This document shows, piece by piece, positions 6,121-61,283 of a stretch of DNA of 64,000 bases. Numbering within the stretch: position 1 is the first letter of the stretch; each line of letters begins with the position of its first letter. The notes under the pieces are model-generated. The model was not told the DNA's origin. It worked only from the letters and a program-made list of their open reading frames with translations, and did no database searches. Made by a program: the position numbers and the translations under genes. Source of the DNA: Macrostomum lignano. Its lineage: Eukaryota. The stretch spans positions 248,001-312,000 of the forward strand of contig NIVC01000475.1 of the NCBI GenBank assembly GCA_002269645.1. The letters are read 5' to 3'.

Positions 6121-6221
6121 AGACAGACGGAGATACGAGATAGACAGACTTATAAATGTCCAGTATAGTCCTTGCGTTCTTTGTTAGGTTGTTTTTGCAC
6201 TTCGATATCTCTGGGAGGCTG

Positions 6222-6546
6222 TGTGCACTTTAAGCGACATGGTCGAACAACCGGCGAGAGGCAGTGCTCCCCATTCCGCCGACTCCCCTGAGCAGGCACG
6301 CAAGCGCGAGGATACGTACGCAGGCACACACTCACACAGGAGTGTACAGCGGCCCTAACTTTATTTATCGTTAGGCATGTACACTTCACTGTGCCTTGTG
6401 GATTGTCTCTCAAGGGGCGTTAATTGCATGAGCAGAGCCAAGCCGAGACTCCAATTCAGCCCCAAATTAATGTGACTGCACTTGGAATCGAGCCTGGGCC
6501 GCTGGCACACCAGAGCCTGCGCTAGACTACTGGGCTACGGTCCCCT
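6222..6546 (-). mobile_element. tRNA-derived SINE (family B)
   Basis: Reverse complement of the copies at 34497 and 50628; A-box/B-box-like head (GCTCGATTCC). Confidence 0.85.
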
Positions 6547-7200
6547 CTGTACGCATACGCAGAGTTTTCTAAGACTGCTAATTAGTGTCGATTTTTCAAA
6601 GACGAGACAAAAGATTGAAAAACTATATGACGAAAACAAATTTATAGATTTGCTGTCAATCTTTCGTATTCATTAGTGATACGTGAGAGAAACAACTGAT
6701 AGTTCAATCATGCTAACGTTCATAAAATTCAGCATGTTTCAGCATGACTCAGAAACATCTAGACCCCCCCCCCAATTGAACAAGGTCTTTAATGCCAGTT
6801 TCAGTATCGTGTGTAGGAACCACGAGCATGCAAAAGTGCCGTCACTCGGATCGTGGCACCCCGGATCACCAGCCCGTTGATGAACTCTTGGAGCAGCTGG
6901 TGCCAGGCATTTTATCCCGTTGCAACTCTTCACAGTTGGCCTCTTTAAAACTGTTCTGCCTTTTGAAAATCGGCTGTCTGCCGCATCTGTTTGTGTGTTT
7001 TTATGCGGTTGGCATTGGAGAGAACAGCGCCGTTGGCTTGCCTAGCTTCAGTCTGTCTACAAAAAAATATGAGAGGACAGGAAAACGGCAGGCCCAGCGG
7101 TGGGGGGCATTGGGAAGAAGTGTCGAGGGCATGGGATGAAAATGGGAATTGAAGGTTTTAGTTCGCGCAGATATCTGTTAGCTGGGATTGGCTGAACGCT

Positions 7201-7630
7201 GTGAGCCTTGTTGAAGACCGACCTCTGTGCCTTTCCTCTCCACCCCTCCCTCTGTCTCTCTTTCTCTTGTTCTCAGCCTTGGCTTAAAATGCGGAAGCAA
7301 AAAATGCTACTCACCCTGCCCTCAGTGCTCCGGTTGTGGAAGAAGCTGGCCCAAGGAGGAGGCGCTCCCCGCCGTGTGTCTCCCCGCTTCCAGCGCTCAA
7401 CGCTGCCTCGCTGTGCACTCACTTTCTCTCTCCTCCTCATGCAGGCGCAAACACAGCAGTACCCCCCGCTGTGAGCAGCATCCAATACCAAGCCTGCAGC
7501 TGCAGCCCTTCCCTCATTACAATTTTCACTGGAATCGGCCGCACACCAACCCAAACCCGCCAACCCAAACCGAAAAATATTTTTTTTATTCGTCCCACCT
7601 GTCTTCCTTCCAACCCGCTCTCTTATTTAG
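7201..7630 (+). other. Putative 5'UTR intron of Cav3
   Basis: GTGAGC at 7201; long pyrimidine tract plus TTTAG ending at 7630, 201 nt before the ATG. Confidence 0.4.
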
Positions 7631-7831
7631 CCCAGCAATTAGAGATTCAATTGGAAGCGCTCTCCCAACTCCTATCGAAATTTAATTGGCGCCAGAACCA
7701 GCCAGTTGAAACAATCGAACGCATTACGGCAGCGACATGCTGAATCACGGCAGCTGGCCTCGACGCTTTTGCCAACGCGAAGCGAGCGCAGCCAAGCGAA
7801 ACTATTGATAGCTCTGAAAGAAAGAACAGCG

Positions 7832-8013
7832 ATGAGCGAGACAGCAGAAGGCCAGCAGCAGCGTCAGTCAAAGACGCCTGACAAGCATCCACCGGAAGTC
7901 GAAGTGACAGCCGAAGGGGAGCTGCTGTACCAGGGCTTCTATCCGGTGGTCTTGAGATTCCTGCACCAGCGACATCCGGTCAGATCGTGGTGCCTTCGAG
8001 CCATCACATGGCC
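7832..8013 (+). CDS. Cav3: Cav3 exon 1 (MSETAEG...[14 protein letters not shown])
   Basis: RSWCL..P motif precedes DI-S1; ends at ATATCCTTTC U12 donor, phase 2. Confidence 0.88.
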
Positions 8014-11000
8014 ATATCCTTTCTGTCTTGTTTTTTTAGCTTGTTTGATTGCATTTTTGTTACAAATAGGGCTATTTGGCTATTTGGTAGGTAGATATGA
8101 TTTTAGGCCATTCATGTTGGTTTGCCATCTCAAAGAGATTAAGGCAGCTTAGTTCAGTCGGTGAGCAAGTTTGACTGTAAAGTTTGTATGGGCTTTAAGC
8201 ACTGCCGCAAATCCAAGACCACAGTGGACCCGCACGGAATCGAATTTGGGTACGGTGTCGCAAGAGTCGGGTGCGTTATCCGCTGAACTGATCTGCCTCC
8301 TGCCTGATGGGTCAAGTGTTTTGTGATTAAGGAAGCGAGGGCATTGTTTTGCGGCAGCAGCCCAAATAATTTTTCATCGTTTTCAACCGCGCAGAGAACT
8401 GGACAAAAATCCCAATTCAATTAAGAGCTGCCCGGCGCTGCTCATCTATCTACCCCTTCCCCTGCACCACTCTCCGAGTTCTTTCCTCGATGCACTTTTC
8501 AATTAAAATCCTTCCTCATAGCAGGGAACGGCAGAAAAGTTCGTTTGGGATTTTGCGGGAAAAAAAGTGATTATTCTTGGAATGATCACTGGGGCACTGG
8601 GGTCAAATGCCAAAGCATTGGTCAAGCAGTGAGTGCTGGAGGCATTCAAATTTTAGCAAACCGCATGGCACACGGCTGGGAGGGTGAGACTGAGAGAGGT
8701 GGCACGAGACGCAGTGTGGGTCGGTTGTCCCAATTTGACTTATTGGTTGGCGAGAACCGCTGCCATAGAGCAATAGTGCAGGAGCAGCAACAGCAGAACG
8801 CATCCGCCTGAGAGAGGCTGAGCTGAGGCCTTTGTCTTCGCCTCATGGAGTCGGGCTGAGCCCAAGGGGATGGGGGAGCAGGGAGGGACGAGGCAAAAGG
8901 ATGCTCTCTAACCCAGAGCTGCAGCGAGCAGGTTTGGGACTGGTGGCTGACTGTCACATCGAATTCCACTCCATTACCGTGGGGTCGTGAGGTCTGAGTT
9001 GGCTTGGGAAAAATGCCCAGTTTTTATTCCTCTGAGTTCCCTTCGTGTTCTCGCAACTGTTTTATGTCTTAAAAATACGTTCTTCTACATGCCGACCTTG
9101 TCCACTTGTCAACTTGTGATTCCACTTGTGCCTTCCGTTTGAGAAATGAGGGGGGGGACCTTGCATCCCGATAGCCTCCCTGTGCGTGTTGTTCTGACTG
9201 TTATCCTATGTGAGTTTTCCTCCCAATACAATCCGCTCAACCAAGTGGGCAGCAGCTTCTGCAATTAACCATTAGAAGGTTGTCAGCAGTCGGACAGGCA
9301 AACCTCGAGATTTGAAGGAAATGAAAATTCTGCAAAGCTTTCGTTCAATTCCAATTTCGTAGCTTCTGAATGGGGTTGATTGGGAATTTCAATTTTCTTT
9401 CATTTCTGCGGCAATCTCTCCATGCAGAAGGAGTCTGCAAGAATGGATTTAATTTCATAATTTTTCGCTTCTACGTAGTCCTCAGTCGGCGATATATATA
9501 GGAAGGCTTTGGGATAGGACGTCTTATCATATTCTTGATTTCCGGGATCAAACCTCTACGTTAGCTGAGTGTTATATGAGGGGGGGGGGTTCACTACTGG
9601 GCCTCTTTCAGTTCAGAACCAGGCACTTGGAAAGAGGCCAGACAGGCTGGGAGAAGGGATCAGTCCCTACTGTACTTCCTCATTTGCCCACAACGGGGCA
9701 ACTGCTTTTAATTGATTTGAAAAATCGTTCTGCACATGGAATTGAGCCCATCGTGAGAGATTGAGGAATTCGGGGGGGGGGGGTATTAGACCGAGGATAA
9801 GGAAGCTGAGAGGCTGAGTGGCTGCTTCAGCAGTGTTGTTGCGACGCCCTACCTGTACTTGGCAACAAAATTGGCAACCCGACTGAACTCGCATTCGAGA
9901 GTCTATCTCGGTTCCGCTTCGCTAATTTCCTTCTCTGAGGGGCCCAAGGTTATGAAGAGGAAACTGGCAACAAAGTCAAGTCTAGACTTTGGGCTGCAGC
10001 TTAGCGTTAAGCATCATCATTTAATGAATAGGGATATGGAATGAGAGAGGCTGAGAGATTAGGAAGGATAGAAGATAAGAGATGGGTGGATTGGGGTGAG
10101 AGATGGGATGGTAGAGGGTGAGAGATGAGAGGGTAGAAGGTGAGAGATGGGAGGGTAGAGGTGAGAGATGGGATGGTAGAGGGTGAGAGATGGGATGGTA
10201 GAGGGTGAGAGATGGGATGGTAGAGGGTGAGAGATGAGAGGGTAGAGGGTAGAGGGTGAGAGATGGGAGGGTAGAGGGTGAGAGATGGGAGGGTAGAGGG
10301 TGAGAGATGGGATGGTAGAGGGTGAGAGATGGGAGGGTAGAGGGTGAGAGATGGGAGGGTAGAGGGTGAGAGATGGGATGGTAGAGGGTGAGAGATGGGA
10401 GGGTAGAGGGTGAGAGATGGGAAGGTAGAGGGTGAGAGATGGGAGGGTAGAGGGTGAGAGATTGAAGGCAGACAGAAGAGGTTGTGTCAGAAGGCCAGAA
10501 GTCTCCTGCATTCTCGTGAACTCAAAGCTCCGCTGTGATGATGTCACCACTGAAATAATAGGGAGCAAGAGGATGAGCTCGCGCCGATGTAATCAAGGTG
10601 GGTGAAGATGGGATAGAATTTAAAGGAGAAAAATGTGCAATAGTGCAGCAGTCCCAGCTAGAAGCCTGTTCCGGACAACCTGAGGCGGGTGGCTGCTCAG
10701 CGCTCTCTTATGCAGCCTGAGCTGAAGCCCCTCGTTTGGCCTTTTTGCCACCTCCGTGCCTCACGTTTGCCTCCTTCCTCCCCTCCCTACCCTTCTGCTC
10801 TGGGCAACTAATGGCTTGATGCTGCTGCTGCAGTTCCTCCCCCCTAGCCTTCGTCTCTCAGCCTCCTCCTTTTGCGCTTCATCTGTAGTCTGTCGGGCAG
10901 ATCGTGTTGCAGACTCTCTCTTGCTAAATAGCTTGCATGTTTCAAAATTTTTTTGCAAAAGCAAATGTTCCTTAACGCGTATTAAGGGCCCAGGTGTGAT

Positions 11001-14000
11001 GATTGGTAAAAATGGTTAAATAGCAGATTCAGCAAAGGCAAGCACAGGCACCGGCACAACCACCGGGTTGGCCGCAAAATGCCAAGCTATAAGATTGCTT
11101 AGACAACAAGCCAGTGAGTGAGAATAGAAGAACGTTGAGTCAGCCTCCCTTAGTACCTCATCCGAACTGGTATGGGAGCTGGCATTGGGATACAGACAGC
11201 AGCGAGGATGAGGGACTGAGGGGAAGCCGAGAGGCGAGGGGAGAAACGGCTAGGAAGATAACTATAGAGAATTGGGGCTGGCAGTCAGTCACACAGTGGC
11301 AGACTGAAGGCTGAGAACAGGAGGGGGAGATGAGGTCGGGGGAAACTGCTGCTGCCAACTGCATCACGGTAGACTTCAGGAGTTCTGGGCATTGTCCCCA
11401 GAGTCGGTGACAAAGGCAAACAGGCATATGGGAGAAAACTGAGAGAGGATTCAGCAAAGGAAAAATATGTTTACTTGAATATACATTTATGCCATCAAAT
11501 GAAATTTCAGTCAGATATCACATCACATATCACCTCATGTTGGTTTAGATGGAATCAGCGGGTGAGAAATTAATGGGGAAGGTGAGGGACACAGGGAAAA
11601 TAGAGGATGAGAGTCACTCAGAGAACGGCAGGCAGATGAGGTGAGAGTCACTCAGAGAACGGCAGGCAGATGAGGTGAGAGTCACTCAGAAAACGGCAGG
11701 CAGATGAGGTGAGAGTCACTCCAAGAACGGCAGGCAGATGAGGTGAGAGTCACTCAGAGAACGGCAGGCAGATGAGGTGAGAGTCACTCCAAGAACGGCA
11801 GGCAGATGAGGTGAGAGTCACTCCAAGAACGGCAGGCAGAGGAGGTGAGAGTCACTCAGAGAACGGCAGGCAGATGAGGTGAGACTGAGAGTCACTCCAA
11901 GAACGGCAGGCAGATGAGGTGAGAGTCACTCAGAGAACGGCAGGCAGATGAGGTGAGACTGAGAGTCACTCCAAGAACGGCAGGCAGAGGAGGTGAGAGT
12001 CACTCCGAGAACGGCAGGCAGATGAGGTGAGAGTCACTCCAAGAACGGCAGGCACACACAGTGGCAGACTGAAGGCTGAGAACAGGAGGGGGAGATGAGG
12101 TCGGGGGAAACTGCTGCTGCCAACTGCATCACGGTAGACTTCAGGAGTTCTGGGCATTGTCCCCCAGAGTCGGTGACAAAGGCAAACAGGCATATGGGAG
12201 AAAACTGAGAGAGGATTCAGCAAAGGAAAAATATGTTTACTTGAATATACATTTATGCCATCAAATGAAATTTCAGTCAGATATCACATCACATATCACC
12301 TCATGTTGGTTTAGATGGAATCAGCGGGTGAGAAATTAATGGGGAAGGTGAGGGACACAGGGAAAATAGAGGATGAGAGTCACTCAGAGAACGGCAGGCA
12401 GATGAGGTGAGAGTCACTCAGAGAACGGCAGGCAGATGAGGTGAGAGTCACTCAGAAAACGGCAGGCAGATGAGGTGAGAGTCACTCCAAGAACGGCAGG
12501 CAGATGAGGTGAGAGTCACTCAGAGAACGGCAGGCAGATGAGGTGAGAGTCACTCCAAGAACGGCAGGCAGATGAGGTGAGAGTCACTCCAAGAACGGCA
12601 GGCAGAGGAGGTGAGAGTCACTCAGAGAACGGCAGGCAGATGAGGTGAGACTGAGAGTCACTCCAAGAACGGCAGGCAGATGAGGTGAGAGTCACTCAGA
12701 GAACGGCAGGCAGATGAGGTGAGACTGAGAGTCACTCCAAGAACGGCAGGCAGAGGAGGTGAGAGTCACTCCGAGAACGGCAGGCAGATGAGGTGAGAGT
12801 CACTCCAAGAACGGCAGGCAGAGGAGGTCAGAGCACTCCAAGAACGGCAGGCAGAGGAGGTGAGAGTCACTCCAAGAACGGCAGGCAGAGGAGGTGAGAG
12901 TCACTCCAAGAACGGCAGGCAGAGGAGGTGAGAGTCACTCCAAGAACGGCAGGCAGATGAGGTGAGAGCACTCCAAGAACGGCAGGCAGAGGAGGTGAGA
13001 GTCACTCCAAGAACGGCAGGCAGAGGAGGTCAGAGTCACTCCAAGAACGGCAGGCAGATGAGGTGAGAGTCACTCCGAGAACGCCAGGCAGAGGAGGTGA
13101 GAGTCACTCCGAGAACGGCAGGCAGAGGTGAGAGTCACTCCGAGAACGGCAGGCAGAGGTGAGAGTCACTCCGAGAACGGCAGGCAGAGGAGGTGAGAGT
13201 CACTCCGAGAACGGCAGGCAGATGAGGTGAGAGTCACTCCAAGAACGGCAGGCAGATGAGGTGAGACTGAGAGTCACTCCAAGAACGGCAGGCAGAGGAG
13301 GTGAGAGTCACTCCGAGAATAGCAGGCAGATGAGGTGAGAGTCACTCCGAGAACGGCAGGCAGATGAGGTGAGAGTCACTCCGAGAACGGCAGGCAGATG
13401 AAGTGAGAGTCACTCAGAGAACGGCAGGCAGATGAGGTGAGAGTCACTCAGAGAACGGCAGGCAGAGGAGGTGAGAGTCACTCCGAGAACGGCAGGCAGA
13501 TGAGGTGAGAGTCACTCCGAGAACGGCAGGCAGAGGAGGTGAGAGTCACTCCGAGAACGGCAGGCAGATGAAGTGAGAGTCACTCAGAGAACGGCAGGCA
13601 GAGGTGAGAGTCACTCCGAGAACGGCAGGCAGAGGAGGTGAGAGTCACTCCAAGAACGGCAGGCAGAGGAGGTGAGAGTCACTCCAAGAACGGCAGGCAG
13701 AGGAGGTGAGAGTCACTCCAAGAACGGCAGGCAGAGGAGGTGAGAGTCACTCCGAGAACGGCAGGCAGATGAGGTGAGAGTCACTCCGAGAACGGCAGGC
13801 AGATGAGGTGAGAGTCACTCCGAGAACGGCAGGCAGATGAGGTGAGAGTCACTCCGAGAACGGCAGGCAGATGAGGTGAGAGTCACTCCGAGAACGGCAG
13901 GCAGATCTGGTAGCGGGCACAGCAGCAGTGAAAGTTGCTAACAGGACAAGCGGAAGACACACGGCAGGACCAAAATTAGCATAAGTATCAGGCGGCAAAA

Positions 14001-17000
14001 TGCCCCGAGGGGGGGGAGGCTCGTCCCGGTTGCAGCCAAGGCTCCCCCGGTCTTGCCACTGCTTTGGGAATCAAATAAGTCCTGCTGCTCCTGACTGCGG
14101 TGCTTTTTCATTCCTTGTTTTTTTATTTTTTAGCCTCAGCCTTCCGTCACGAAAAGCCCGCGGCAGTTCGAGGCGTGCGGAGGAAAAAAGTCGCAGTGCA
14201 AAGCAGCAGAGTTTGCGCTTTTTATTTTCAGCCTGCTTCCCCTGTTTGCATTGTTGTGGAAGTCTGGCACGCATTTTTGGTGGGTGGAATTGTTTATTAT
14301 CGGCACCGGGTCACTCTGCGGACCGTCACTGGCTTTGAGAACTTTTATCGCTCGTTGGATCGCTGAAAAACTTTAATACCGCATGAGTTTTGCAATTTGG
14401 TTTGGTAATTATTGATGAAACAATTCAAGCTAACAATTAATGATGCCGTTACCTTTCTTCTACTGACTGACTCATTTTCTCATCACACCCATTTGTCTCT
14501 TATCTCACGTTCCTGTAACTCATCTCACCCTCCAGTCTCTAATCTCACGCTTCAGTCTCTAATCTCACCCTCTAGTCTCTAATCTCACACTCCAGTCTTT
14601 AAACTCACGCTCCAGTCTCTAATCTCACCCTCCAGTCTCTAATCTCACCCTCCAGTCTCTAATCTCACCCTCCAGTCTCTAATCTCACCCTCCAGTCTTT
14701 AAACTCACGCTCCAGTCTCTAATCTCACCCTCCAGTCTCTAATCTCACGCTCCAGTCTCTAATCTCACGCTCCAGTCTCTAATCTCACGCTCCAGTCTCT
14801 AATCTCACCATTCAGTCTCTAATCACACCCATTTGTCTCTTATCTCACGTTCCTGTAACTCATCTCACCCTCCAGTCTCTAATATAACGCTCCAGTCTCT
14901 AATCTCACCATCCAGTCTCTAATCTCACCATCCAGTCTCTAATCATACCCATTTGTCTCTTATCTCACGTTCCTGTAACTCATCTCACCCTTCAGTCTCT
15001 AATCTCACGCTTCAGTCTCTAATCTCACACTCCAGTCTCTAATCTCACTCTCCAGTCTCTAATCTCACCCCCTGTCTCTAATCTCACACTCCAGTCTCCT
15101 ATCTCACACTACAGTCTTTAATCTCACTCTCCAGTCTCTAATCTCACTCTCCAGTCTCTAATCTCACCCTCCTGTCTCCAATCTCACACTCCAGTCTCTA
15201 ATCTCACCCTCCTGTCTCTAATCTCACACTCAAGTCTTTAATCTCACACTCCAGTCTCTAATCTCACCCTCCAGTCTCTAATCTCACCCTCTAGTCTCTA
15301 ATCTCACCCTCCAGACTCTAATCTCACCCTCCAGTCTCTAATCTCACACTACAGTCTCCAATCTCACACTCCAGTCTCCAATCTCACACTCCAGTCTCTA
15401 ATCTCACTCTCCAGTCTCTAATCTCACCCTCCTGTCTCTAATCTCACACTCCAGTCTCTAATCTCACACTACAGTCTTTAATCTCACCCTCCAGTCTGTA
15501 ATTTTTTTCCAATCTCTTATCTCATCCGATTGTCTGATCTGACCAATCTCATGCTTACGAAATTCATCTCAACATCAGTCTCTCATCTCACCTAGGAAAG
15601 AACAGATATCAAAGAGATATAACTTTGAAACTTTTCAAAATGTCAGTAAAATAGTGACAGAAACGAAGCATTTGATTTCACTTAAAAAAATTTTCCTTAA
15701 CCAACAAAACTTCGAAAAATGCATCTGGCTGCACTTGGTTCGAGCGAGTCAGCATCTGCGTAATCCTCATCAACTGCATCACTCTGGGCATGTACCGACC
15801 CTGCGAGGATGAGCAGTGCTCAATGACCCGCTGTCAGATCCTGTCCGGATTCGACCACGCCGTTTTTGCCTTCTTCGCAATCGAAATGCTTGTCAAAGTC
15901 GTTGCCATGGGCTTTCTTGGAAAGCTGGGCTATCTGGGAGATTCTTGGAATCGACTGGACTGCTTCATCGTATTGGCTGGGTGAGTTGTGTTTTGAAAGC
16001 CTGTCACCCTTCACTGTTTTGAAGGCCTATCACCATTCAGTGTTTTGAAGGCCTGTCACCATTCAGTGTTTTGAAGGCCTGTCACCCTTCACTGTTTTGA
16101 AGGCCTGTTACCCTTCACTGTTTTGAAGGCCTGTCACCCTTCACTGTTTTGAAGGCCTGTCACCCTTCACTGTTTTGAAGGCCTATCACCATTCACTGTT
16201 TTGAAGGCCTGTCACCCTTCATTGTTTTGAAGGCCTGTCACTTTACACTGTTTTGAAGGCCTGTCACCTTACACTGTTTTGAAGGCCTATCACCATTCAC
16301 TGTTTTGAAGGCCTGTCACCCTTCATTGTTTTGAAGGCCTGTCACTTTACACTGTTTTGAAGGCCTGTCACCTTACACTGTTTTGAAGGCCTGTCAACTC
16401 GCCCCGCTTGATACCCGAAATTGCATCGATTCCACCCAAGCCGACTCAAACAAGAATCTACTCAGACTTAGGCTAGCAGATTCTCGGCTCCAGATGCCGC
16501 AGTCTTGAATAGATCAGGCAGAGCTGGAACCGGTTGTTAGGCCGAGCTCATGACTAAGGGATAAGATCCTGGACTTGGATTCTGGTCCCCAGGGGGCTGC
16601 AAGATGAAGGTGGGGAGAGGGAGAAGGAGGCCGTTCGAGCTCGTCGGCTCATTGATAATTCAAAGAATTGTCGCTTTTCGGCGTTACTCAAATGTCTTCG
16701 TCTCGGAGACCGTCTCAGTTCCTTCTCTTTTCCTGGCCAGCGGCTGCCCTGGCCAGCTTTGCTGAACTGGGCTCAGGCACTTCACCTACACATTTTTAGC
16801 TCCTTATTCTGACCCTTCATTCCTCCCTTCATCTGACCCCTCATGCCCTTCATTCCTCCCTTCATCTGAACCTTCATGCCCTTCATTCCTCCCTTCATCT
16901 GAACCTTCATGCCCTTCATTCCTCCATTCATCTGAACCTTCATGCCCTTCATTCCTCCCTTCATCTGAACCTTCATTCCCTTCATTCCTCCCTTCATCTG

Positions 17001-20000
17001 ACCCTTCATTCCCTCCATTTCTCCCTTCATCTGACCCTTCATTCCCTTCATTTTTCCCTTCACCTGACCCTTCATTCCCTCCATTCCTCCCTTCATCTGA
17101 CCCTTCATGCCCTTCATTTCTCCCTTCATCTGACCCTTCATTTGATCCATTCCTCCCTTCATCTGATCCTTCATTTGATCCATTTCTTCCTTTATATGAC
17201 CCTTCCTTCCTTATTTGACCCTTCATTTCCTTAATCTGACCCTTCATTCCCTTCATCTGACCCTTCATTCCCTTTTCCAACCCTTCATTCCCTTCATCTG
17301 ACCTTTCCTTTTTCTGCTTTTCTTCTCTTATTTTTTATCCCTACGTCTCTCCCCCTTTTGATTTCCCTACATTTCAATGCATAGAGTTATATTCTTATTA
17401 GCTTTCCTAACACGCATCAATAGTTGAGTAATTTTATCCTGTCACTCCCCTGAACAGAACCTTGGAGTACCTGCCGCAGACCAAGGACCTGAGTCTAACA
17501 GCCATTCGAACCATTCGCGTACTGAGGCCTCTCCGAGCCATTAACCGCATTCCAAGTGAGCTTTCTTCTATAGAAATTTACTAGTTTATACCTATCTGAC
17601 TGAATACCTGCCTAAATACCTGTCTCAGTACCTGTTTAAATATCTGTCTGAATACCTTTTTGAACACCTGTGTGAATACCTGTTTAAATACCTGTCTGAA
17701 TACGTGTCCAAACAAATGTTTAAATAATTGTCTCAATACCTTTTTGATTACCTGTCTGAATATCGTCTAAATACCTGTTCTGAATACCTTTTTAAATACC
17801 TGACTGAATACCTTTTTAAATACCTGACTGAATACCTTTTTAAATACCTGACTGAATACCTTTTTAAATACCTGACTGAATACCTTTTTAAATACCTGAC
17901 TGAATACCTGCTTGAATACCTGTGTGAATACCTCTGAGAATACCTGTTTATATACCTGTTTAAATAACTGTTTAAAATATGCCTGAATGCCTGTCTGAAT
18001 ACCTGTTTAAATACCTGTCGGAATACCTTTCTGAATACCCATTTAAATACCTGTCTGAACCTTTTTAAATACCCATATTTAACAATTTGCATTCACCAAC
18101 ACGCAGGCATGCGGATCCTGGTGATGCTGCTGCTGGACACCCTGCCAATGCTTGGCAACGTGCTGCTGCTCTGCTTTTTCGTGTTCTTCATCTTCGGCAT
18201 TATCGGGGTGCAGCTGTGGAAGGGCCTCCTGCGCCACCGGTGCTACTTGGAGTCCAACTTCACCTACCCGCATCCGGGGTGAGACTGAGACTGCGTCCCA
18301 ACCAAAATTCCCAACTAAATTAGAAACTTCCATAGCTGCCTCTCCTGACTCTCAAAGCTGCCTCTCCTGACTCTCATAGCTGTCTCTCCTGACTCTCATA
18401 CGCTCGTAGCTGTCTCTCCTGACTCTCATACGCTCGTAGCTGTCTCTCCTGACTCTCATAGCTGTCTCTCCTGACTCTCAAAGCTGCCTCTCCTGACTCT
18501 CATAGCTGTCTCTCCTGACTCTCATACGCTCGTAGCTGTCTCTCCTGACTCTCATAGCTGTCTCTCCTGACTCTCATACGCTCGTAGCTGTCTCTCCTGA
18601 CTCTCATAGCTGTCTCTTCTGACTCTCATACGCTCGTAGCTGTCTCTCCTGACTCTCATAGCTGTCTCTCCTGACTCTCATAGCTGCCTCTCCTGACTCT
18701 CATAGCTGCCTCTCCTGACTCTCATAGCTGCCTCTCCTGACTCTCATAGCTGCCTCTCCTGACTCTCATAGCTGCCTCTCCTGACTCTCATAGCTGCCTC
18801 TCCTGACTCTCATAGCTGCCTCTCCTGACTCTCATAGCTGCCTCTCCTGACTCTCATAGCTGCCTCTCCTGACTCTCATAGCTGCCTCTCCTGACTCTCA
18901 TAGCTGCCTCTCCTGACTCTCATAGCTGCCTCTCCTGACTCTCATAGCTGCCTCTCCTGACTCTCATAGCTGCCTCTCCTGACTCTCATAGCTGCCTCTC
19001 CTGACTCATTTAGCGGCCTTTCCTGACTCATAGCTGTCCCTGCTGACTCTAAATAGCCCATTTATGGAGAACTTAAGTACAAAGACGGTTTCATTAAACC
19101 TAGTACCCAAGAAGCAATGTACCAACTCAGAACATGATAATCTGTTTATTAAACTTCTGATAAACTGATAAAACCGGCTTCCAGTGAAGCGCGTCTTGGC
19201 AAGGACTAATTAAGAAGATGACGGACACTCAAGCCGTCCTACTAGAGATCTCCTTGATAAACCAGCCTCCCCCCATATACCTTCCAGCATGAACCTGAGC
19301 GAGTACTACAAGCCGAACACCAGCGTTGACACCCCGGTTGCTGCCAAAGATTTCATCTGCGCCCTGGAGGACTCCAGCGGCATCCAGACCTGCAAGAACA
19401 TCAAACCCACCGTGCTCTGGCCCGACGATGGCCGCAAATATCTCAGCTGCAACCGGTCCGCTAATATGCGCGGTGACAACAAGCCTACTAATAGTAGCTG
19501 CGTTAACTGGAATCAGTACTACACTCAGTGCAGGCCCGGGTTCAGTAATCCCTACATGGGATCCATCAACTTTGACAACATCGGATTCGCCTGGGTGGCC
19601 ATCTTTCAGGTTCGTCAGGATTTTTTTAAATATAGTCGATTCAAACTAGACTGTTTGGCAACCAATCAGACTCGAGGAGGGGTTCAGAGAGTCGCAGGGA
19701 ATGAAGAATGTACAGCAATCTGAAGGCGAAACTTCTTCAACCAATCAGACTCGAGGAGGGGGCAGAGAGACGCGGGGAAGGAAGAATGTAGAGCAATCTG
19801 AAGGCGAAACTTCTTCAACCAATCAGACTCGAGGAGGGGGGCAGAGAGTCGCGGGGAAGGAAGAGTGTACAGCAATCTGAATGGTGAAACTTCTTTAACC
19901 AATCAGACTCGAGGAGGGGATCAGAGAGTCGCGGGGAAGGAAGAGTGTACAGCAATCTGAATGGTGAAACTTCTTCAACCAATCAGACTCGAGGAGGGGG

Positions 20001-23000
20001 TCAGAGAGTCGCGGGGAAGGAAGAGTGTACAGCAATCTGAATGGTGAAACTTCTTCAACCAATCAGACTCGAGGAGGGGGTCAGAGAGTCGCGGGGAAGG
20101 AAGAGTGTACAGCAATCTGAAGGCGAAACTTCTTCAACCAATCAGACTCGAGGAGGGGTCAGAGAGTCGCGGGGAATGAAGAATGCACAGCAATCTGAAG
20201 GCGAAACTTCTTCAACCAATCAGACTCGAGGAGGAGTCAGAGAGTCGCGGGGAATGAAGAATGCACAGCAATCTGAAGGCGAAACTTCTTCAACCAATCA
20301 GACTCGAGGAGGGAGGCAGAGAGTCGCGGGGAAGGAAGAGTGTACAGCAATCTGAATGGCGAAACTTCTTCAACCAATCAGACTCGAGGAGGGAGGCAGA
20401 GAGTCGCGGGGAAGGAAGAGTGTACAGCAATCTGAATGGCGAAACTTCTTCAACCAATCAGACTCGAGGAGGGGGGCAGAGAGTCGCGGGGAAGGAAGAG
20501 TGTACAACAGACTGAAGGAGAAGCTTTGCAACAAAATCAGTAAAAACAAAAAATTCAAAAGCGAGAAAAACCATTTAAAATGAGCAAATAAAAAGCTTTT
20601 CATGCCAAAGCAATTAATTTTTTGTTAAACGTCTTCTAAAAACGTCTTCCACAAGCAGTGACTGGTTGTTCTTTTTGACTCTCTGTTTGGATAAGGAAAA
20701 GAGATTTTTATTGCAAGAAAGATTTCGTGCAGAGAAATCTCTGGCCAGACTCCCGTCAGACATTGCGGCTTAATGAGATTTTTGGAGTCGTTGCAGAGCC
20801 AGCCGCGTGTCTGACTCAAAATCCGAGGCTACCCAGGCATTAATTTGAATAATTGCCACAACCCAGAATCATCCCCTAAGCTGAGGCGTCCGCCCGTTTT
20901 GTGTTGGAGATTTTTACTCTCAATGCTGATTAGATTAACGTTGCTGATTAGAAATAGGCATTTGTGAGCCGGAATTCGAGTCATGCTACAAAAAAAAGCG
21001 ATTTTATTTCAAATGATTTTGCACAAAATTGAATTCGCATATAAAAGTGCAAGATCTGTCTGTGTTTGTTTTTTACTTTGAACAATTCAAACAAAATAGC
21101 GCGCCAATTTAATTTGTAAAATTCGTATCAGGTGATCAGTCTGGAGAGCTGGGTGGACATCATGTACTATGTGCAGGACGCACACTCGTTCTGGGACTGG
21201 ATGTACTTTGTGGCTCTGATTGTGGTAAGTTCAGTGATCTGTTTGAACCCGAAGTTTAGGGTTGAAATCTTGCAGATTGAGCTGTCAGTGTGAGGTTGAG
21301 CGGGCGTTCACTGGGTAGATAGCGGGAGCTCACTGGGTAGATAGCGGGAGTTCACTGGTTAGATAGTGGGAGTTCACTGGGTAGATAGCGGGAGTTCACT
21401 GGTTAGATAGTGGGAGCTCACTGGGTAGATAGCGGGAGTTCACTGGGTAGATAGCGGGAGTTCACTGGTTAGATAGTGGGAGCTCACTGGGTAGATAGCG
21501 GGAGTTCACTGGGTAGATAGCGGGAGTTCACTGGTTAGATAGCGGGAGTTCACTGGGTAGATAGCGGGAGTTCACTGGTTAGATAGTGGGAGCTCACTGG
21601 GTAGATAGCGGGAGTTCACTGGGTAGATAGTGGGAGTTCACTGGGTAGATAGTGGGAGTTCACTGGGTAGATAGCGGGAGTTCACTGGTTAGATAGTGGG
21701 AGCTCACTGGGTAGATAGCGAGAGTCACTGGGTAGATAGCGGGAGTCACTGGGTAGATAGCGGGAGTCACTGAGTAGATAGCGGGAGTCACTGGGTAGAT
21801 AGCGGGAGTTCACTGGGTAGATAGCGGGAGTCACTGAGTAGATAGCGGGAGTTCACAGCCAAAAGCCCGCAACTCTCCAGATCGGCTCGTTCTTCATGAT
21901 CAACCTGTGCCTGGTTGTCATAGCAACCCAGTTCTCGGAGACCAAGCGCCGCGAAGTGGAAAAGATGATGCTGGAGCGGCAGCGCTACCAGTCCAGCTCG
22001 AGTCTGGAGAGCAGCAGGCAGCCTGGCAGCTGCTACAGTCAGATTGTCCGCCTCATCATTCGAGTCTGCAAGCGGGGCTGCCGCAGACTCTGGCATCGGT
22101 GGCGCCAGATGAGCCGCTCGAATCTGGCCAGTTCGACCTGTCACGAGCCGGCGGCTGGGCTTCCGTTCCAGCAACAGCGACGAGTTGCTGGTTCGGCGTC
22201 CCTGGCTCCGCCGCCCATGGCCACGCCGGAGCTGTCAGATGTCGATTCGCAGAATTCGCCTCGGCTACTGGGAGGTCGCGGTGGCGGCGGAGTGGTGAAC
22301 CTCCGAGTGCTTCTGACTGCTCCATCGGGACTCGGCGAGTGTGCAGCTGGCAGCGGAAATGGCGGCGGCGTCAGCAGTCGTCGTTCGTCGTTGAACAGCT
22401 CGACGGCCGCTTGGTCGATTGCTCGAGGCTACACGGAGCGGGACCTGTTCGCCACAGGACTGTCCGGTGGTGAGTGAGCGGGACTGCTTGAGAGTGAGCG
22501 GGACTGTTTGAGAGTGAGCGGGACTGTTTGAGAGTGAGCGGGACTGCTTGAGAGTGAGCGGGACTGTTTGAGAGTGAGCGGGACTGTTTGAGAGTGAGCG
22601 GGACTGTTTGAGAGTGAGCGGGACTGCTTGAGAGTGAGCGGGACTGCTTGAGAGTGAGCGGGACTGCTTGAGAGTGAGCGGGACTGCTTGAGAGTGAGCG
22701 GGACTGCTTGAGAGTGAGCGGGACTGCTTGAGAGTGAGCGGGACTGCTTGAGAGTGAACGGGACTGCTTGAGAGTGAGCGGGACTGCTTGAGAGTGAGCG
22801 GGACTGCTTGAGAGTGAGCGGGACTGCTTGAGAGTGAGCGGGACTGCTTGAGAGTGAGCGGGACTGCTTGAGAGTGAGCGGGACTGCTTGAGAGTGAGCG
22901 GGACTGCTTGAGAGTGAGCGGGACTGCTTGAGAGTGAGCGGGACTGCTTGAGAGTGAGCGGGACTGCTTGAGAGTGAACGGGACTGCTTGAGAGTGAGCG

Positions 23001-26000
23001 GGACTGTTTGAGAGTGAGCGGGACTGCTTGAGAGTGAGCGGGACTGCTTGAGAGTGAGCGGGACTGCTTGAGAGTGAGCGGGACTGCTTGAGAGTGAGCG
23101 GGACTGCTTGAGAGTGAGCGGGACTGCTTGAGAGTGAACGGGACTGCTTGAGAGTGAGCGGGACTGCTTGAGAGTGAGCGGGACTGCTTGAGAGTGAACG
23201 GGACTGCTTTGATTTTGCGTGCTAAAATTGAGCAAATCCTCCGGAAAGAATGAGTTTTACAACTTACTATTGTGTGTCTCACGGTTGTTTTACGGTCAGC
23301 AAAAAGCATGGAATCATCTCACAAGTTGGAAACCCAGTGATCGGGCACTGTATGAAAGGCGGCAATCGTTGATATGAAGAGCGGACTGACACAGTGTCTG
23401 AACTGAGATATGACCGGTAGGCAGGGGAGCCATCAGCTGAAGGTCTCGTAAGTCAATCATCCTGGCAGCTCAGTACGGTCCCGCTGTCTTAGGCTAAGAG
23501 CTGGTGAATATTTCATGCGGCTATAGGGCCGCACGCCATCTCTTACTGAGTCCATCCCAGCCTCCGCTCATCATCCTTTTCTCTCCTCGCAGCGCGAGTG
23601 AAAGAAAATAAGGCGAAGGCTGGGCTGGCTGCAACAAGCTGCTGAGCCACCCTCAGTGAGATCGATTTACAAATAAACACCTCAGCGGCTCTGGGCTCTT
23701 TGGTCGCAAATGTGCTCAACCTGCTCTGGTCTCGGGCTTCTTTGAGCTGTTTAATTTCTGGGGCGGCTTTCGCCCACTTTCCAGCGCGTCATTCTTTAAC
23801 GATCGTTCTTTCACTCAGGGTAAACGGTTTGTTTGAAGGACCGGCCTACTGCACTGGTGCCGTGAGAAAGTTCAAAGCCACCTGTGCCAATATTCCAGTT
23901 CCTACATTCAAAGTGTGGCCTGACCACAGATACTGAGTAGTATATTTGGCCTGACCGCTGTGTCCTTTGTGTTGCTTAATTAATTCTAATTTATAATTTT
24001 AATTCACAAATAGTGAACGCAATGCTTTAGTTGTAATTACATAAAACATAATATTGAACTACATAATATAGAGCTACATAGAAGTAGAAGGATCACTAAC
24101 CAAGTAAGTATAAGTGCATTTGCATTAATAAAAGAAGCTTCATGTCGAAGTTAAGAGATTCATTTGGGAATCCCTACGATGTCGAGGCTTGCAGGGAATC
24201 GCTATAATGCTGTAGTGCTATAATGACTCTTGGAGAGAATTAATGAAATGTCAATGCATTAGGGTTAGGGCTAGGGTTAGGGTTAGGGTTTGGGTTAGGG
24301 TTAGGCTAGGGTTAGGGTTAGGGTTAGGGTTAGGGTTCGGCTAAAGTTAGGGTTATTGTTAGGGTTAGATTTTTTTAGATTTCAAGGCTTATGGGGGCAT
24401 CGCTGAGATGTCAAGGGGGGAATTTGATATGTTGAAGCTTGTGGGGGGGGGATTACTGACATGTCAAGGCTTTTAAGGGACTGCTGAGGTATATTGCAAT
24501 GCAAAGAGATGCTACATGTAGTTTATTACAAAACTTGTACTGCATTTTTGGCTCCCCAACGCTAAGATACTAAGCTAAAAAATACTACTAGCGCTTCACA
24601 AACTTAAGCAGATGTCAGGCTGTAGGGTTTGTGTTAGGGTTGGTATTAGGGTTTGGGTTTAGGGTTAGGTTCATGGTTACATCTTTAAGATTCAGGTTAG
24701 GGCTAGGGTTAGGGTAGCTTATAACTTAGCTCATGTAGCTTATTAAAAATGTTTATCATTGAAGCGTCATGCAATAATAATGGAAGCGTCATATGAAAAA
24801 TCATGGAAGCGTCATGTGAAAAATAATGGAAGCGTCATGCAAAAAATAATGGAAGCGTCATACAAAAAATAATGGAAGCGTCATACAAAAAATAATGGAA
24901 GCGTCATACAAAAAATAATGGAAGCGTCATGCAAAAAATAATATACAAATATTAAATTTAGGGTTATGCTGAGGGTTAGGGTTAGGGTTAGAAGTTTAAC
25001 AGGATATTTTTTTAAGATTTCAAGGCTACATGTAGCTTATTAAAAAACGTGTATTGCATTTCTTTGGCCCCCCAACGGGGGGCGTAGATTGCTAGTACAA
25101 TGCTAAAACATTAGATGGGTCGGCAGGGGGGTTGTGTGCACCCTGGCGCACTTCAAGCGACATTGTCACACAACCTGTGAGAGGCATTACTGCCCATTCC
25201 GCCGACTCCCCTGAGCAGGCACACAAGCGCGCGGATACGTACGCAGTCATACGCACAGGCACACACTCACACAGGAGTGTACAGCGGCCCTAACTTTATT
25301 TATCGTTAGGCATGTACACTTCACTGTGCTTTGGGGTTGGCCCTCAAGGGCATTAACTGCACGATCAAAGCCAAGCCGAGATTCCAAATTAGCCCCAAAT
25401 TAATGTGACTGCACTGGGAATCGAGCCTGGGACGATGGAACATCGGAGCACCGCACAGGACCACTTAGGCTAAGCCCTTTGAAAATAAGCACAAATAAGC
25501 TCTGCACACAGATTGATGATGACCATTGGACAGCGTTTTCCATATCGGATTATGCCCGTTTCTTTCTAAAGCAACTTCTAAGTTTCAAGGGCTGCTAGCG
25601 TGCTATATGTTGGTTTATCGCATGAGAAAAGAAGACGTTGTATAACTTTACTCATTGCTGGATGATGAACTTGCTGTCATGCAGAAGAGCAGCAAGCTGA
25701 CGACGACTGGCTGAGGTCGGGAACGCCCGGCTCCAACAAACCGGCCGCTCCATCGAGATGGTCCTGCTGGTCAGTTTCAGGTTAGTCCGATCGCCCAGTT
25801 CTTATATCGCGGATATTGTTCTGATAATCTACATTTCCAACCCTAAAAAATCAACCAGCTGTGACCGATGTCTTCCACCGAATCCGAGACTCAATTCAGA
25901 GACTTGTTGAGCACAGATTTTTCCAACGTGGCATCCTGTTGGCCATTCTAATCAATACATTTAGTATGGGCATCGAGTACCACGACCAGGTATTGTTGAA

Positions 26001-29000
26001 CCTATAAACCTTCCTAAATAGTAAATTTACGTGAGGAAAAAACGTAAGTTACACAACCTCAAATTCTGGATTTATTTCAGCCCAAGCAGCTGACTGAGTT
26101 CATTGAGTACAGCAATTTGGTGTTTTGCGTTGTGTTCGCGCTTGAAATGCTGCTTAAGCTGGTTGGTGAAGGATTCTTCAATTACATCAGCAGCGGCTTC
26201 AACGTTTTCGATGCCAGCATCGTCATTCTAAGGTAACGTATAGTATATGTGTGCTTATGCTTGGCGTTTCCCTCTCATTTCACAACCTAAAAATGTCATT
26301 CCAAATTGGGTGCTGTGAAATTTGGTAAGAGACTTAGAGATTTTGGTTAGTCCGACGATGCAAAAGTCAGGGGCAGATACTGGCACCCTGGCTTGTTTTC
26401 GAGTGTGACCAGACTGATTCACATTAAAACTGAGCGATTACTCAATCTGAAAGTCCCTCATCATTGCAGCATTTTCGAGCTCATCCAAGACGGCAACAGC
26501 GGATTATCTGTGCTGCGCACATTCCGCCTGCTCCGCATACTCAAACTAGTCAGGTTCCTGCCAGCGCTCCGCCAGCAGCTGTTCGTCATGATCAAGACCA
26601 TGGACAACGTGGCCACATTCTTCGCTCTGTTGGTGCTCTTCATCTTCATTTTTAGGTAGGCCTTCTTTGCGGTCAGGGAAGCTGATCGAATGGTCCTTGA
26701 CCTAAAAAGTCACTGGTCCAGGCTGCTCATTAATCAAAAACGGCGAAAAACTATACGACTCAAAACTTCCTGTAGACTTAACTGAACAGTTTCTCATGAT
26801 TAGTCGTCGGGAATCGAGTATATTTAACTTCAAACTGTATAGGATTCAAACTTCAATCAAGTTAATCAATTTACGACCCAAAAAGCAAAGCTGTCTTTAT
26901 TCCAAATTAAACCGTCGATGAGTTACTGAAGTACACTGCATGTAGGCTATCGATGACTCATTAAGTTATCAAAGATCCACGCTAAGCTTTTGACGACTCA
27001 CACCAATGGTCGCATCCAATCCAGTAGCTCTAATCCGATAGCGATGATAGCGTTGCCAGTACATGCAGGAACGGTCGGTCGGGTGATTCCAAAAGTTCAA
27101 ACTCGCATGTATGGTCCAAACAACTGTCTCCAATGACTCTAAACCCTCCTTGAAAAATGTGCCCGACCCGCAGCGTGCTGGGCATGACTCTTTTCGGCGG
27201 CAAATTCTGCTGGCACCCAGACGGCAGCACCTGCAGCTGCAGCGAGCGAGCCGATCCCAACAGCGACTGCACCTGCGACCGGGCCAACTTTGACACCATC
27301 ATGTGGTCTCTGGTCACCGTGTTTCAGGTGAGCAACGACGGCTTTTCATTTAACGCGATCAAACTAAAAGACGTTCTTTAAGTAGAGAACGTTACTAGAG
27401 CATAGAGAACACACTGGATTTAGTACATCTTCAGTTCGCTATCAAAACCAGTGCCTTGAGACCAAAATTTCGCGTACCCGACTTTATTGCAAAGCATTGC
27501 AACCTCCTAGCTTAGCTACTATTAGTAAGGGGTTCCTCCAATCTGATCCTTCATTGAAAGATTTATTGAAACCTTAACAAATGCAGGTTCTGACCCAGGA
27601 GGACTGGAACATTGTGCTCTACAACGGCATGGCCAGAACTTCGTCTTGGGCAGCTTTGTACTTCATCGCCCTCATGACGTTCGGAAACTACGTGCTGTTT
27701 AATCTGCTGGTTGCCATCCTTGTGGAGGGATTTTCTAGCGAGGTGAGTCCAGGAGAATTTCTGCAGGATTTGAGTGCATCCACTAGGCAGACTGCAATGG
27801 CGTGCATCACTGAGCTACTCTCTAGTAGAATTATTTATAGTTAGCCTCTGTTGATATCGTTTGCCTTTTGTTGCATTTTTAACAAAACTCGTCTGCTGCT
27901 AGCGGAGAAAGTCGCTATTATTTTTATTTCAATTCAATCCGGGGAATCGTCGTTTCCTTTGTTTGATCTACTGGTAGATTTTGTCTTTTTTGCGAGAGCA
28001 CTCTAGAGTGAAAACAAGGACTGCTCAAGTAACATATATATAGGACGCAACACTCTAAATCTATGGTAAATGTTTTGAAGGCAACTTTTCGCCGAAAAAT
28101 ACACTACAGAGATAGGAGGTTTTAAATTTTTCAGCACAAAAATTGTTATTGCTTTTGATAGGAGGCAGATTCAGTGTTTAGCTCATTGCTTTGAAATTCT
28201 TCCAGTACCTAAAGATAAATAGTTTGTCAAGAAAATATTTTAAATAAATAATTCCACCCAAAATTCGAAACGTGACTTTGCGCAGAGAAAGTACTATATT
28301 ATGGAAAAATACCGGCTTCGCCAGGTAAAACGATCATATTTTTGGCTTCAGTCTGTAGATCCCTGATCGTAGATTTCGTTAGTTCTGCCGCTTAAATTTT
28401 GCCTTGTCGTAGCTGCTGTTTTGGTTTTTGTTGACAATTTTGCAGGTGTAAAATGCAGACTTATTAAGTCGCGCATTGACACTTGTAGCAGCGTTTCTGA
28501 GTCAAGTCCCGAGCTGTCAATCAACCAATGCTTTGGACAAAAGAGTATTCTAATGCCTCACTGAAGCACGTTATAGACTGTAGTTGCGACCTCGTCCTTG
28601 TCTATATTCCTATTGTCTGCATTCCCTTACTTTTAGTTTAACCTGGAGTGATCATTTGAGTTTTATTTGAGCATAACACGCATAATAAAAATTAACAATG
28701 CAAGCAACTGTTTAGAAAAGTCAGACGTTCATTACCATTGTAGAGAACTTAGTCCAGCGCACTCTCGCTGCACCAATCCAGTTTTACTACGGTAGATTTC
28801 AAAATCATCCATTCTGCACAGTTTTATCTGGAAATAAAACTCAGGAAAATTTTCCTGAGTTCACCGGAAATTGACAGGGTCATCTCAATTAAGCTTTGAT
28901 ATACTGTCTGAGTGCGTGAGCAGCATTGGGCAATTCAGCATAGAAAGCGCGCCTCACTTCCAGAAGGGCGGCTCAATCAAGGGATCTCAGAAAGAGTCCA

Positions 29001-35000: not shown

Positions 35001-38000
35001 CTGTTCTTCCTGCTGTTCTTCATCTTTGCCGCGCTGGGAGTCGAACTGTTCGGCCGGCTGGGTGAGTGAGGACAACTGGAGGTCAATGAGGGCAATGAAT
35101 TAGCCGAACAACTCATCCTGCAGGTCCTCTAATCCCAATAACTAATCCCCTGGCAGAGTGCTCACTGGACAACCCGTGCGTCGGTCTCAGTCGTCACGCG
35201 CACTTCGAGAATTTCGGCATGGCCTTCCTGACCCTGTTCCGCATAGCAACCGGGGACAACTGGAACGGGATCATGAAGGACACCCTGCGCGGCAAGTGCG
35301 ACTCCAGCGACAGCTGCGTGAAGAACTGCTGCGTGTCGGGCTTTTTTGCGCCAATCTACTTTGTGGTGTTCGTGCTCATGGCCCAGTTCGTGCTGGTCAA
35401 CGTTGTAGTGGCCGTGCTCATGAAGCACCTGGAGGTCTGCGGCCGGGGTTGCCGGGTTGCTGGGTAGGGTAGGGTGTTGTAGGGTAGAGTGGGGTGTTGT
35501 AGGGTAGAGTGGGGTGCTGTAGGGTAGAATGGTTGTTGTAGAGTAGTGTGGGGTGTTGTAGGGTAGAATGGTTGTTGTAGGGTAGTTTGGGGTGTTGTAG
35601 GGTAGTGTGGGGTGTTGTAGGGTAGTGTGGGGTGTTGTAGGGTAGAATGGTTGTTGTAGGGTAGTATGGGGTGTTGTAGGATAGAATGGTTGTTGTAGAG
35701 TAGTGTGGGGTGTTGTAGGATAGAATGGTTGTTGTAGGGTAGTGTGGGGTGTTGTAGGATAGAATGGTTGTTGTAGGGTAGTGTGGGGTGTTGTAGGATA
35801 GAATGGTTGTTGTAGAGTAGTGTGGGGTGTTGTAGGGTAGTGTGGGGTGTTGTAGGGTAGTGTGGGGTGTTGTAGGGTAGTGTGGGGTGTTGTAGGGTAG
35901 TGTGGGGTGTTGTAGGGTAGTGTGGGGTGTTGTAGGGTAGTATGGGGTGTTGTAGGGTAGTGTGGGGTGTTTTAGGGTAGTGTGGGGTGGTGTTGTAGGA
36001 TAGAGTTAGGTGTTGTAGGGTGTAGTGGGGTGTTGTTGGGTAGGGTATAGTGCATCTGGGCAGAGCGGTCTATCCCAAATGCAGTAGCTTGCTTTCCTAC
36101 CAACGGCAGGAGTCGCACAAGATGATGTCAGACGATGACGAGCTGGAAAAAGAAATTCGTCGAGAACTTGAAGAGGAGAATCGAGAAAGTCAACGGCAAC
36201 GGGAAAGACGTCAAAGGGAGGTGAAGGAGGTGAGTGAGAATTGGCATCAAGGTTATTTCCAGCAACACTATTATCGACCCTCCTCCGACACTATTAAACG
36301 ACACTATTACCGACACTATTAACCAACACTATTACCGACACTATTATCCGACACTATTAGCCGACACTATTACCGACACTATTAGCCGACACTATTACCG
36401 ACACTATTAACCGACACTATTATCGACACTATTAGCCGACACTATTACCGACACTATTAGCCGACACTATTAACCGACACTATTACCGACACTATTAACC
36501 GACACTATTACCGACACTATTAACCGACACTATTACCGACACTATTACCGACACTATTACCGACACTATTAACCGACACTATTACCGACACTATTAACCG
36601 ACACTATTACCGACACTATTAACCGACACTATTACCGACACTATTAACCGACACTATTACCGACACTATTAGCCGACACTATTAGCCGACACTATTAACC
36701 GACACTATTAACCGACACTATTACAGGACACTACTAACCGACACTATTAGCCGACACTATTAACCGACACTATTAACCGACACTATTAGCCGACACTATT
36801 AACCGACACTATTAACCGACACTATTAACCGACACTATTAACCGACACTATTAACCGACACTATTAACCGACACTATTAACCGACACTATTAGCCGACAC
36901 TATTAACCGACACTATTAACCGACACTATTAGCCGACACTATTAACCGACACTATTAACCGACACTATTAACCGACACTATTAACCGACACTATTAACCG
37001 ACACTATTAACCGACACTATTAACCGACACTATTAACCGACACTATTAACCGACACTATTAACCGACACTATTAACCGACACTATTAACCGACACTATTA
37101 GCCGACACTATTAGCCGACACTATTAACCGACACTATTAACCGACACTATTAACCGACACTATTAACCGACACTATTAACCGACACTACTAACCGACACT
37201 ATTAGCCGACACTATTAACCGACACTATTAACCGACACTATTAACCGACACTATTAACCGACACTATTAGCCGACACTATTAACCGACACTATTAACCGA
37301 CACTATTAACCGACACTATTAACCGACACTACTAACCGACACTATTAGCCGACACTATTAACCGACACTATTAACCGACACTATTAACCGACACTATTAG
37401 CCGACACTATTAGCCGACACTATTACAGGACACTATTAGCCGACACTATTAACCGACACTATTAGCCGACACTATCAGCCGACACTATTAACCGAAACTA
37501 TTACAGGACACTATTAGCCGACACTATTAACCGACACTATTAGCCGACACTATTAGCCGACACTATTAACCGACACTATAACCGACACTATTAGCCGACA
37601 CTATTAACCGACACTATTAGCCGACACTATAACCGACACTATTAACCGACACTATTAGCCGACACTATTAGCCGACACTATTAACCGACACTATTAGCCG
37701 ACACTATAACCGACACTATTACCGATACTAAAATCGACAGGTCCGTTAGTAACAACACAATTACCGACACTACTCTAATAATATTACCGGCACTATTTCC
37801 GACATTAGTACCGACAAAATTATAACACTTCCAACATTAATACCGACTTTATTACCGACACTACTGTCGACACGATTACCGAGACGATTACCGACACTAT
37901 TCCGGGAAACTTCAATCCTCACCTGTTTCAGTCCGAGGACTCCACAAGCGAGGACGCCATGCAGAATCTGTCGGATACCCAGGCGGATGTCGGCGGCCCC

Positions 38001-39316: not shown

Positions 39317-61283
<21,967 letters not shown>

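Follow-up and report, generated by a model that had tools for sequence, protein, structure and literature searches.

Four-domain voltage-gated Ca2+ and Na+ channel genes reportedly share a conserved U12-type (AT-AC) intron, described by Wu & Krainer in 1999 and by Spafford et al. in 1999. The intron precedes the segment S1 of domain I (DI-S1), and nearly all Cav and Nav channels have kept a U12 AT-AC site at this 'D1S1' position (PMC6259924). Fux et al. (2018) demonstrated the D1S1 intron for Nav2, Nav1, Cav1, Cav2 and Cav3, from choanoflagellate to human (PMC6259924), and Lin et al. (2010) described intron 1 of Drosophila Ca-alphaT as an AT-AC U12 intron with a U12-type orthologue in human (PMC2831892). 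Here, we analyse the first intron of a predicted Cav3 gene in a 64,000-nucleotide (nt) stretch of the Macrostomum lignano contig NIVC01000475.1 (positions 248,001 to 312,000), which is referred to as the window. This intron is very probably the ancient U12-type AT-AC D1S1 intron of a four-domain voltage-gated channel gene. Our confidence concerns the U12-type identity of the intron and not the choice of its 3´ splice site, for which two candidates were found.

The first intron of a predicted Cav3 gene

Judged from its translated exons, the gene encodes the alpha-1 subunit of a Cav3 (T-type) calcium channel, a four-domain voltage-gated channel. The named matches in the protein collection are T-type alpha-1G/H/I subunits, and the matches carry PF00520. 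The best identities are 58% over the N-terminus plus exon 2 and 70% over domain III (Helobdella robusta), and nothing above 71% identity was returned by the protein-collection searches with the channel. For exon 2, the closest matches (63-70% identity) are host-like contigs in Joint Genome Institute (JGI) metagenomes. The exons of domains I-IV were mapped to 15735-35437 by tblastn with pieces of compact homologous genes and by inspection of open frames. The pore loops read from the translations are LESW (DI), TQEDW (DII), SKDGW (DIII) and TGDNW (DIV), and form an EEDD selectivity filter, the typical Cav3 motif. More than 17 exons downstream of exon 1 are open and conserved, and with the EEDD pore intact the channel looks functional. 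The other junctions read in the gene, the exon 2 donor GG/GTGAGT (15981/15982) and about 16 more, are GT-AG; the exon 1 junction is the only AT-AC junction. The elements around this junction are the following.

7832..8013, + strand: Cav3 coding exon 1, from the ATG at 7832 to ...ITW plus CC; intron phase 2
8014..8022, + strand: U12-type AT-AC 5´ splice site ATATCCTTT, 9/9 against the consensus
8014..15734, + strand: intron with the distal AC as its 3´ end, the version of the original prediction; 7721 nt
8014-15710, + strand: intron with the proximal AC as its 3´ end; 7697 nt
8087..8092, + strand: cryptic U2-type donor GTAGGT, 73 nt inside the intron, pairing with the AG at 15743-15744
15693..15701, + strand: U12 branch-point sequence TTCCTTAAC, 9/9 against the consensus; branch adenosine taken as 15700 (or 15699)
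15709..15710, + strand: proximal candidate 3´ splice site AC, 10 nt past the branch adenosine, in frame and stop-free
15733..15734, + strand: distal candidate 3´ splice site AC, that of the original prediction, 34 nt past the branch adenosine; gives the canonical ...ITW-P-WFER
15735..15981, + strand: Cav3 exon 2 (start of DI S1-S2-S3), T TGG TTC GAG ... GCT GG, followed by a GTGAGT donor; begins at 15711 with the proximal AC

The translation of exon 1 begins with MSETAEG and ends with ...ITW and the bases CC, which are the first two bases of a Pro codon. The ATG at 7832 is the first in-frame ATG after the stop at 7640-7642, and none occurs earlier in the upstream in-frame stretch. Exon 1 aligns to the Cav3 N-terminal motif L(P/Y)xPGF...RSWCLxxIT, and the homology stops exactly at the splice site. 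The bases directly 3´ of the exon are ATATCCTTTC (8014-8023); the extended U12 5´ splice-site consensus used for comparison was /ATATCCTT(T) (PMC6259924; PMC2831892). When 8013 is joined to 15735, where exon 2 reads T TGG TTC GAG CGA GTC, the product is ...ITW-P-WFERVS. Alignment to 18 Cav3 homologues showed P-W-F-E-R without variation or insertion, and the rotifer-like homologues read exactly LITWPWFER. All of the elements named in the original prediction of an AT-AC intron, from exon 1 ending in ...ITW-CC through ATATCCTTT and TTCCTTAAC to AC/T TGG TTC GAG, were recovered at their positions, and the predicted restoration of P-W-F-E at the junction agrees with the homologues.

The branch site matches TCCTTRAY at 8/8 positions, and no other stretch in the final 60 nt of the intron reaches 6/8. 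No polypyrimidine tract follows the branch site, as by direct reading 15702-15734 is approximately 47% pyrimidine and A-rich, and both candidate 3´ termini are AC. The 5´ site and the branch site together retain all 18 of the 18 U12 signal positions (9/9 each). The sequence RTATCCTT is not rare per se, with two occurrences in the window versus four expected, and the significance of the U12 motifs thus lies in their position rather than in their rarity. By our own arithmetic, the chance of an exact 8-mer at the homologous codon phase is ~1.5e-5, that of TCCTTAAC at most 60 nt from the homologous acceptor is ~8e-4, and the joint chance of the 5´ motif and the branch motif at homologous positions is ~1e-8. 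RTATCCTT recurs once in the window (GTATCCTT, 44020-44027); this copy was considered as the start of a second U12 intron and was rejected as a chance occurrence, because it forms part of a tandem repeat with a 14-nt unit (gtacatcctgatat) and does not adjoin an exon edge. Another copy of TTCCTTAAC at 10968 lies deep within the intron and is irrelevant.

Removal of the intron by the major spliceosome, with the AT-AC signals left as relics, was weighed by combining all GT/GC donors in 7900-8400 with all AG acceptors in 15500-15790 and enumerating the in-frame pairs. The exon 2 frame is closed upstream by a TGA at 15673-15675. Because no AG is present between this stop and 15742 (from 15676 onwards), every in-frame GT/GC-AG pairing uses the acceptor 15745, 15749 or 15753 and deletes W-F-E, and the earlier claim that no GT-AG solution joins the exons at the conserved position holds. 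The pair TTG/GTAGGT (8086/8087) with AG/15745 (AG/CGA) is in frame and free of stops, and its donor resembles GTRAGT. Its product, however, lacks the invariant P-W-F-E and carries 24 spurious, unconserved residues, and its acceptor has no polypyrimidine tract. Relic signals would also not be expected to remain perfect at all 18 positions, and U12 signals are kept in all of the orthologues that have an intron at this position. We consider such a route highly improbable. Even less credit is given to a chance coincidence of the motifs or to a pseudogene, in which exons 1 and 2 would be unjoined or the locus unexpressed. The additional copies of RTATCCTT (44020) and TTCCTTAAC (10968) could be cited in its favour, but a coincidence at the homologous phase has the very small joint chance given above, the exons further downstream remain open and conserved and the pore is intact, and the homology of exon 1 to Cav3 N-termini ends precisely where the putative intron starts.

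The AT-AC termini are shared with the U2-type AT-AC introns ('type II'), which are removed by the major spliceosome. These introns have an ATAAGT-like 5´ site that fits GTRAGT except at the first base, and they have no TCCTTAAC branch site. The U2-type class was excluded for the intron in the window, as its 5´ site is ATATCCTTT.

Orthologous introns in other animals

Metagenome contigs were scanned with the homologue alignment, which yielded 80 loci, and duplicates were removed. A 3´ intron end was counted as orthologous when N-TGG-TTY-GAR was preceded by a sequence that fits TCCTTRAY in at least 7/8 positions. In total, 31 distinct orthologous 3´ ends were obtained, with AC in 30 and AA in one. 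The distance from the branch adenosine to the last intron base (count in brackets) is 10 (2), 11 (1), 12 (6), 13 (5), 15 (4), 16 (5), 17 (7) or 19 nt (1), with a single outlier at 39 nt (L008). In three loci (L001, L006 and L078), ...IT[N/S]-CC/ATATCCTTT was observed at the same position and in the same Pro-codon phase 2. The loci with individually read intron ends, and those without the intron, are the following.

L001, Centruroides sculpturatus (scorpion): 5´ ...KLITN-CC/ATATCCTTT; 3´ TTCCTTAAC ... ataa/A TGG TTT GAA (AT-AA variant); spacing 12 nt; intron ~25 kb
L005, Trichonephila (spider): 3´ TTCCTTAAC tcgctgtcgcAC/G TGG; spacing 13 nt
L006, Logan ERR6928992: 5´ ...LITN-CC/ATATCCTTT; 3´ TCCTTAAC, then AC/A TGG; spacing 19 nt; intron 2.5 kb
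L078, ERZ1740059: 5´ ...LITS-CC/ATATCCTTT; 3´ TTCCTTAAC, then AC; spacing 13 nt; intron ~0.54 kb
L002 10142, L003 10151, L004 10142, L010-L024 and L069: loci without the intron

Exon 1 of the Trichonephila gene was not found within 10 kb upstream of its exon 2. The prediction that the intron is of the U12 AT-AC type and occupies the ancient position before DI-S1 is borne out by the consensus matches of 9/9 and 9/9, by the same position and phase in the three loci with both ends, by the 31 orthologous 3´ ends and by the published D1S1 introns (PMC6259924; PMC2831892). At least 12 distinct sequences lack the D1S1 intron and read xPWFER without a break; these are rotifer-like or short-intron, compact-gene contigs. 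As read from these genomic loci, distant animals share the intron in position, phase and type, and some lineages have lost it; its absence in small compact-genome invertebrates indicates an apparent loss that was either repeated or ancient.

In the Centruroides scaffold KZ494113.1, a block of exon 2 and exon 3 occurs two to three times within 12 kb (32714-33114, 35121-35632 and 44147-44661) with identical flanking intron ends. This repetition reflects either an artefact of the assembly or a local duplication of recent origin.

Two candidate 3´ splice sites

A spacing above 20 nt between branch site and 3´ splice site was reportedly found by Dietrich et al. in 2001 to activate alternative sites, and the U12 spliceosome is said not to scan for a distal site. 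Published spacings are optimal at 11-13 nt and usually span 10-20 nt, and U12 3´ site choice is error-prone (PMC3584512; PMC8199999). The 10-nt spacing of the proximal AC falls within this usual range, whereas the 34-nt spacing of the distal AC lies outside it. The original prediction had placed the 3´ boundary at 15734. The AC and the restored PWFER at this point are real, but the boundary itself is insecure, as 34 nt falls outside the 10-19 nt of 30 of the 31 orthologues. A second acceptor was already hinted at in that prediction ('15735/15711').

We consider the proximal AC (15709-15710), which sets the start of exon 2 at 15711 and adds the eight residues SKNASGCT, the somewhat likelier main 3´ splice site. 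In addition to the orthologue spacings, this choice is favoured by the in-frame and stop-free state of the proximal site, which by our estimate has a chance of ~0.23, and which is as expected if an insertion in the spacer survived only through a reachable site that keeps the frame. AAC/ also serves as the 3´ end in several orthologues (L057 and L062-L065). A preference for YAC at position -3, which would favour the distal CAC over the proximal AAC, was dropped as an argument because these same orthologues splice at AAC/.

The sole other spacing outlier, L008 (JAOQID010108696.1, GCA_025491035.1; 2082-2130), has the same layout, which also favours the proximal site. Its perfect branch site TTCCTTGAC lies 39 nt before the conserved AC/G-TGG, and an in-frame proximal AC at 15 nt would add exactly eight residues (PWTIAIYT). 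Unlike the window, L008 offers a further but weaker branch-like motif, CCCTGGAC (6/8), at 16 nt upstream of its distal AC. The counterpart of exon 2 in L008 is interrupted by an additional intron after ...KILQ, and L008 is therefore not a close relative of the animal of the window.

Several observations weigh against the proximal site. Approximately 60 homologues were seen, and none has an insertion between P and WFER. The distal AC/N-TGG is kept at the very nucleotide at which every orthologue splices, and 10 nt is at the lower limit of the known spacings.

Joining of 8013 to 15735 through the distal AC (15733-15734) as the only or main junction, which is nested in the U12 explanation and differs only in the 3´ cut, is a serious contender, although one that we rate below an even chance. 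This junction would restore the invariant ITxPWFER without an insertion, with AC/N-TGG at the same orthologous nucleotide that is used in 31 other sequences, and L008 provides a second case of long spacing at the conserved junction. Classifiers of the intronIC type look for a branch site anywhere between -55 and -5, such that the distal version would still be called U12 (PMC7367187), and SpliceRack deems a good branch site at 10-20 nt 'not always necessary' (PMC1557818). Conversely, 34 nt exceeds the 8-30 nt window in which SpliceRack accepted a good branch site (PMC1557818), in addition to the published and orthologous ranges, and a rival in-frame AC is present at 10 nt. No second branch-like motif of at least 5/8 was found in the window 10-20 nt upstream of the distal AC, and no RNA structure that would shorten the gap was detected, as folding of 15690-15745 gave z = -0.12 and the L008 equivalent gave z = +0.61 versus shuffles. 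Use of the distal AC as the only or main site would need either a relaxed spacing tolerance or an unrecognised weak branch point in the A-rich 15715-15719.

Both ACs could be used, which would produce isoforms 24 nt apart. We tentatively put forward, as a possibility that we do not favour, that either the distal AC is truly used 34 nt past a perfect branch site, as L008 would do independently at 39 nt, or the two ACs alternate to yield Cav3 isoforms that differ by eight residues before DI-S1. If distal use or AC switching is true, the intron would represent a naturally occurring departure from the strict U12 spacing rule at a site where 30 of the 31 orthologues obey it. The sole new question raised by this locus is which of the in-frame ACs is used, and the answer implies either a relaxed spacing rule or a channel with an eight-residue insertion.

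Minor splicing, repeats and comparison with known introns

The steps by which the intron would be removed are standard for the U12 class. The U11 small nuclear ribonucleoprotein (snRNP) would pair with ATATCCTTT at 8014, and the U12 snRNP with TTCCTTAAC at 15693-15701, with the adenosine 15700 or 15699 bulged. U4atac/U6atac.U5 would then catalyse lariat formation and the joining of the exons at a downstream AC dinucleotide. Since none of the 18 signal positions departs from the consensus and the remainder of the channel gene is undamaged, one can soundly infer that the organism retains a working minor spliceosome. Rfam was searched for small nuclear RNA (snRNA) and other non-coding RNA genes, with the gathering threshold for the window as a whole and with E<=1 for 7000-17000, and neither search gave a match. 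The absence of minor snRNA genes and of genes for minor-specific proteins from the window is expected at 64 kb and is uninformative on the genome. Flawless preservation of the U12 signals, in a channel gene that is otherwise intact, constitutes a cheap marker of retained minor splicing. In the comparison set, the same intron is deleted in many small compact-genome invertebrates.

The original prediction also held that standard gene predictors would truncate or split such a gene, and truncation was indeed found in a spider. In the deposited proteins P0054 and P0055, the first residue is a Met internal to exon 2, and an unannotated AT-AC acceptor lies just upstream of this start in the Trichonephila locus (L005, around 9980). 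A predictor restricted to GT-AG may handle the gene in the window badly, by truncation at the internal Met of exon 2, by splitting, or by choice of the spurious 8086/15745 pair, which removes the invariant PWFE. The correct first junction is to be set by hand or from RNA-seq.

The intron was further predicted to have tolerated three large minisatellites and a 765-bp duplication. All four are real, as listed below together with examples of other arrays in the window (minisatellites as reported by Tandem Repeats Finder, TRF).

10046..10462: minisatellite, 22-nt unit, 18.6 copies
11603..13906: minisatellite, 34-nt unit, about 67 copies
14495..15502: minisatellite, 20-nt unit, 50.5 copies
11285..12828: tandem duplication of two units of ~765-766 nt, with 11285-12062 matching at +765/766; overlaps the 34-mer array
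15989-16396, 18331-19050, 19659-20526, 22472-23209, 36285-37730, 40182-42325, 45986-47180 and 54032-54932: further arrays

The repeat load, however, is not special to the intron. Tandem repeats occupy 31% of the window, with 48% of the AT-AC intron and 29% of the rest. Because nearly every large Cav3 intron holds its own minisatellite with a period of 13-80 nt (several of 1-2 kb and 90-98% regular), the load describes the genome and not this intron. A nearly perfect (GTA)n microsatellite is located at 49558-50267 (~237 copies, 99% identity).

An interspersed repeat of ~330 bp, which is probably an element similar to a short interspersed nuclear element (SINE), occurs in four copies that are 86-93% identical: 6218-6558 (+), 25122-25451 (+), 34501-34825 (-) and 50612-50982 (-). 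One copy is upstream of the gene, two are in introns and one is downstream. By eye, the region 8140-8300 is tRNA-like (…gcttagttcagtcggt…; on the other strand …ttcagcggataacgc…ttcgattcc). No tRNA was identified in this region by ARAGORN, and Rfam gave no match there; the region may be a degenerate remnant of the head of a tRNA-derived SINE.

Compared with the orthologues retrieved here, the intron in the window exhibits two discrepancies in the spacing. The distance from the branch adenosine to the homology-defined 3´ site is 34 nt rather than the 10-19 nt of 30 of the 31 orthologues, and a second in-frame AC is present at 10 nt. Its length (7.7 kb) and its tandem-repeat content of 48% also distinguish it from the known D1S1 introns. 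Conversely, it interrupts the Pro codon of xPWFER in the same phase as in the orthologues retrieved here, and it shares with the D1S1 intron the location before DI-S1, the AT-AC termini, ATATCCTTT, TTCCTTAAC and the absence of a polypyrimidine tract. The feature is a further instance of the well-described D1S1 U12 intron, and it changes nothing for U12 introns or for Cav3 channels.

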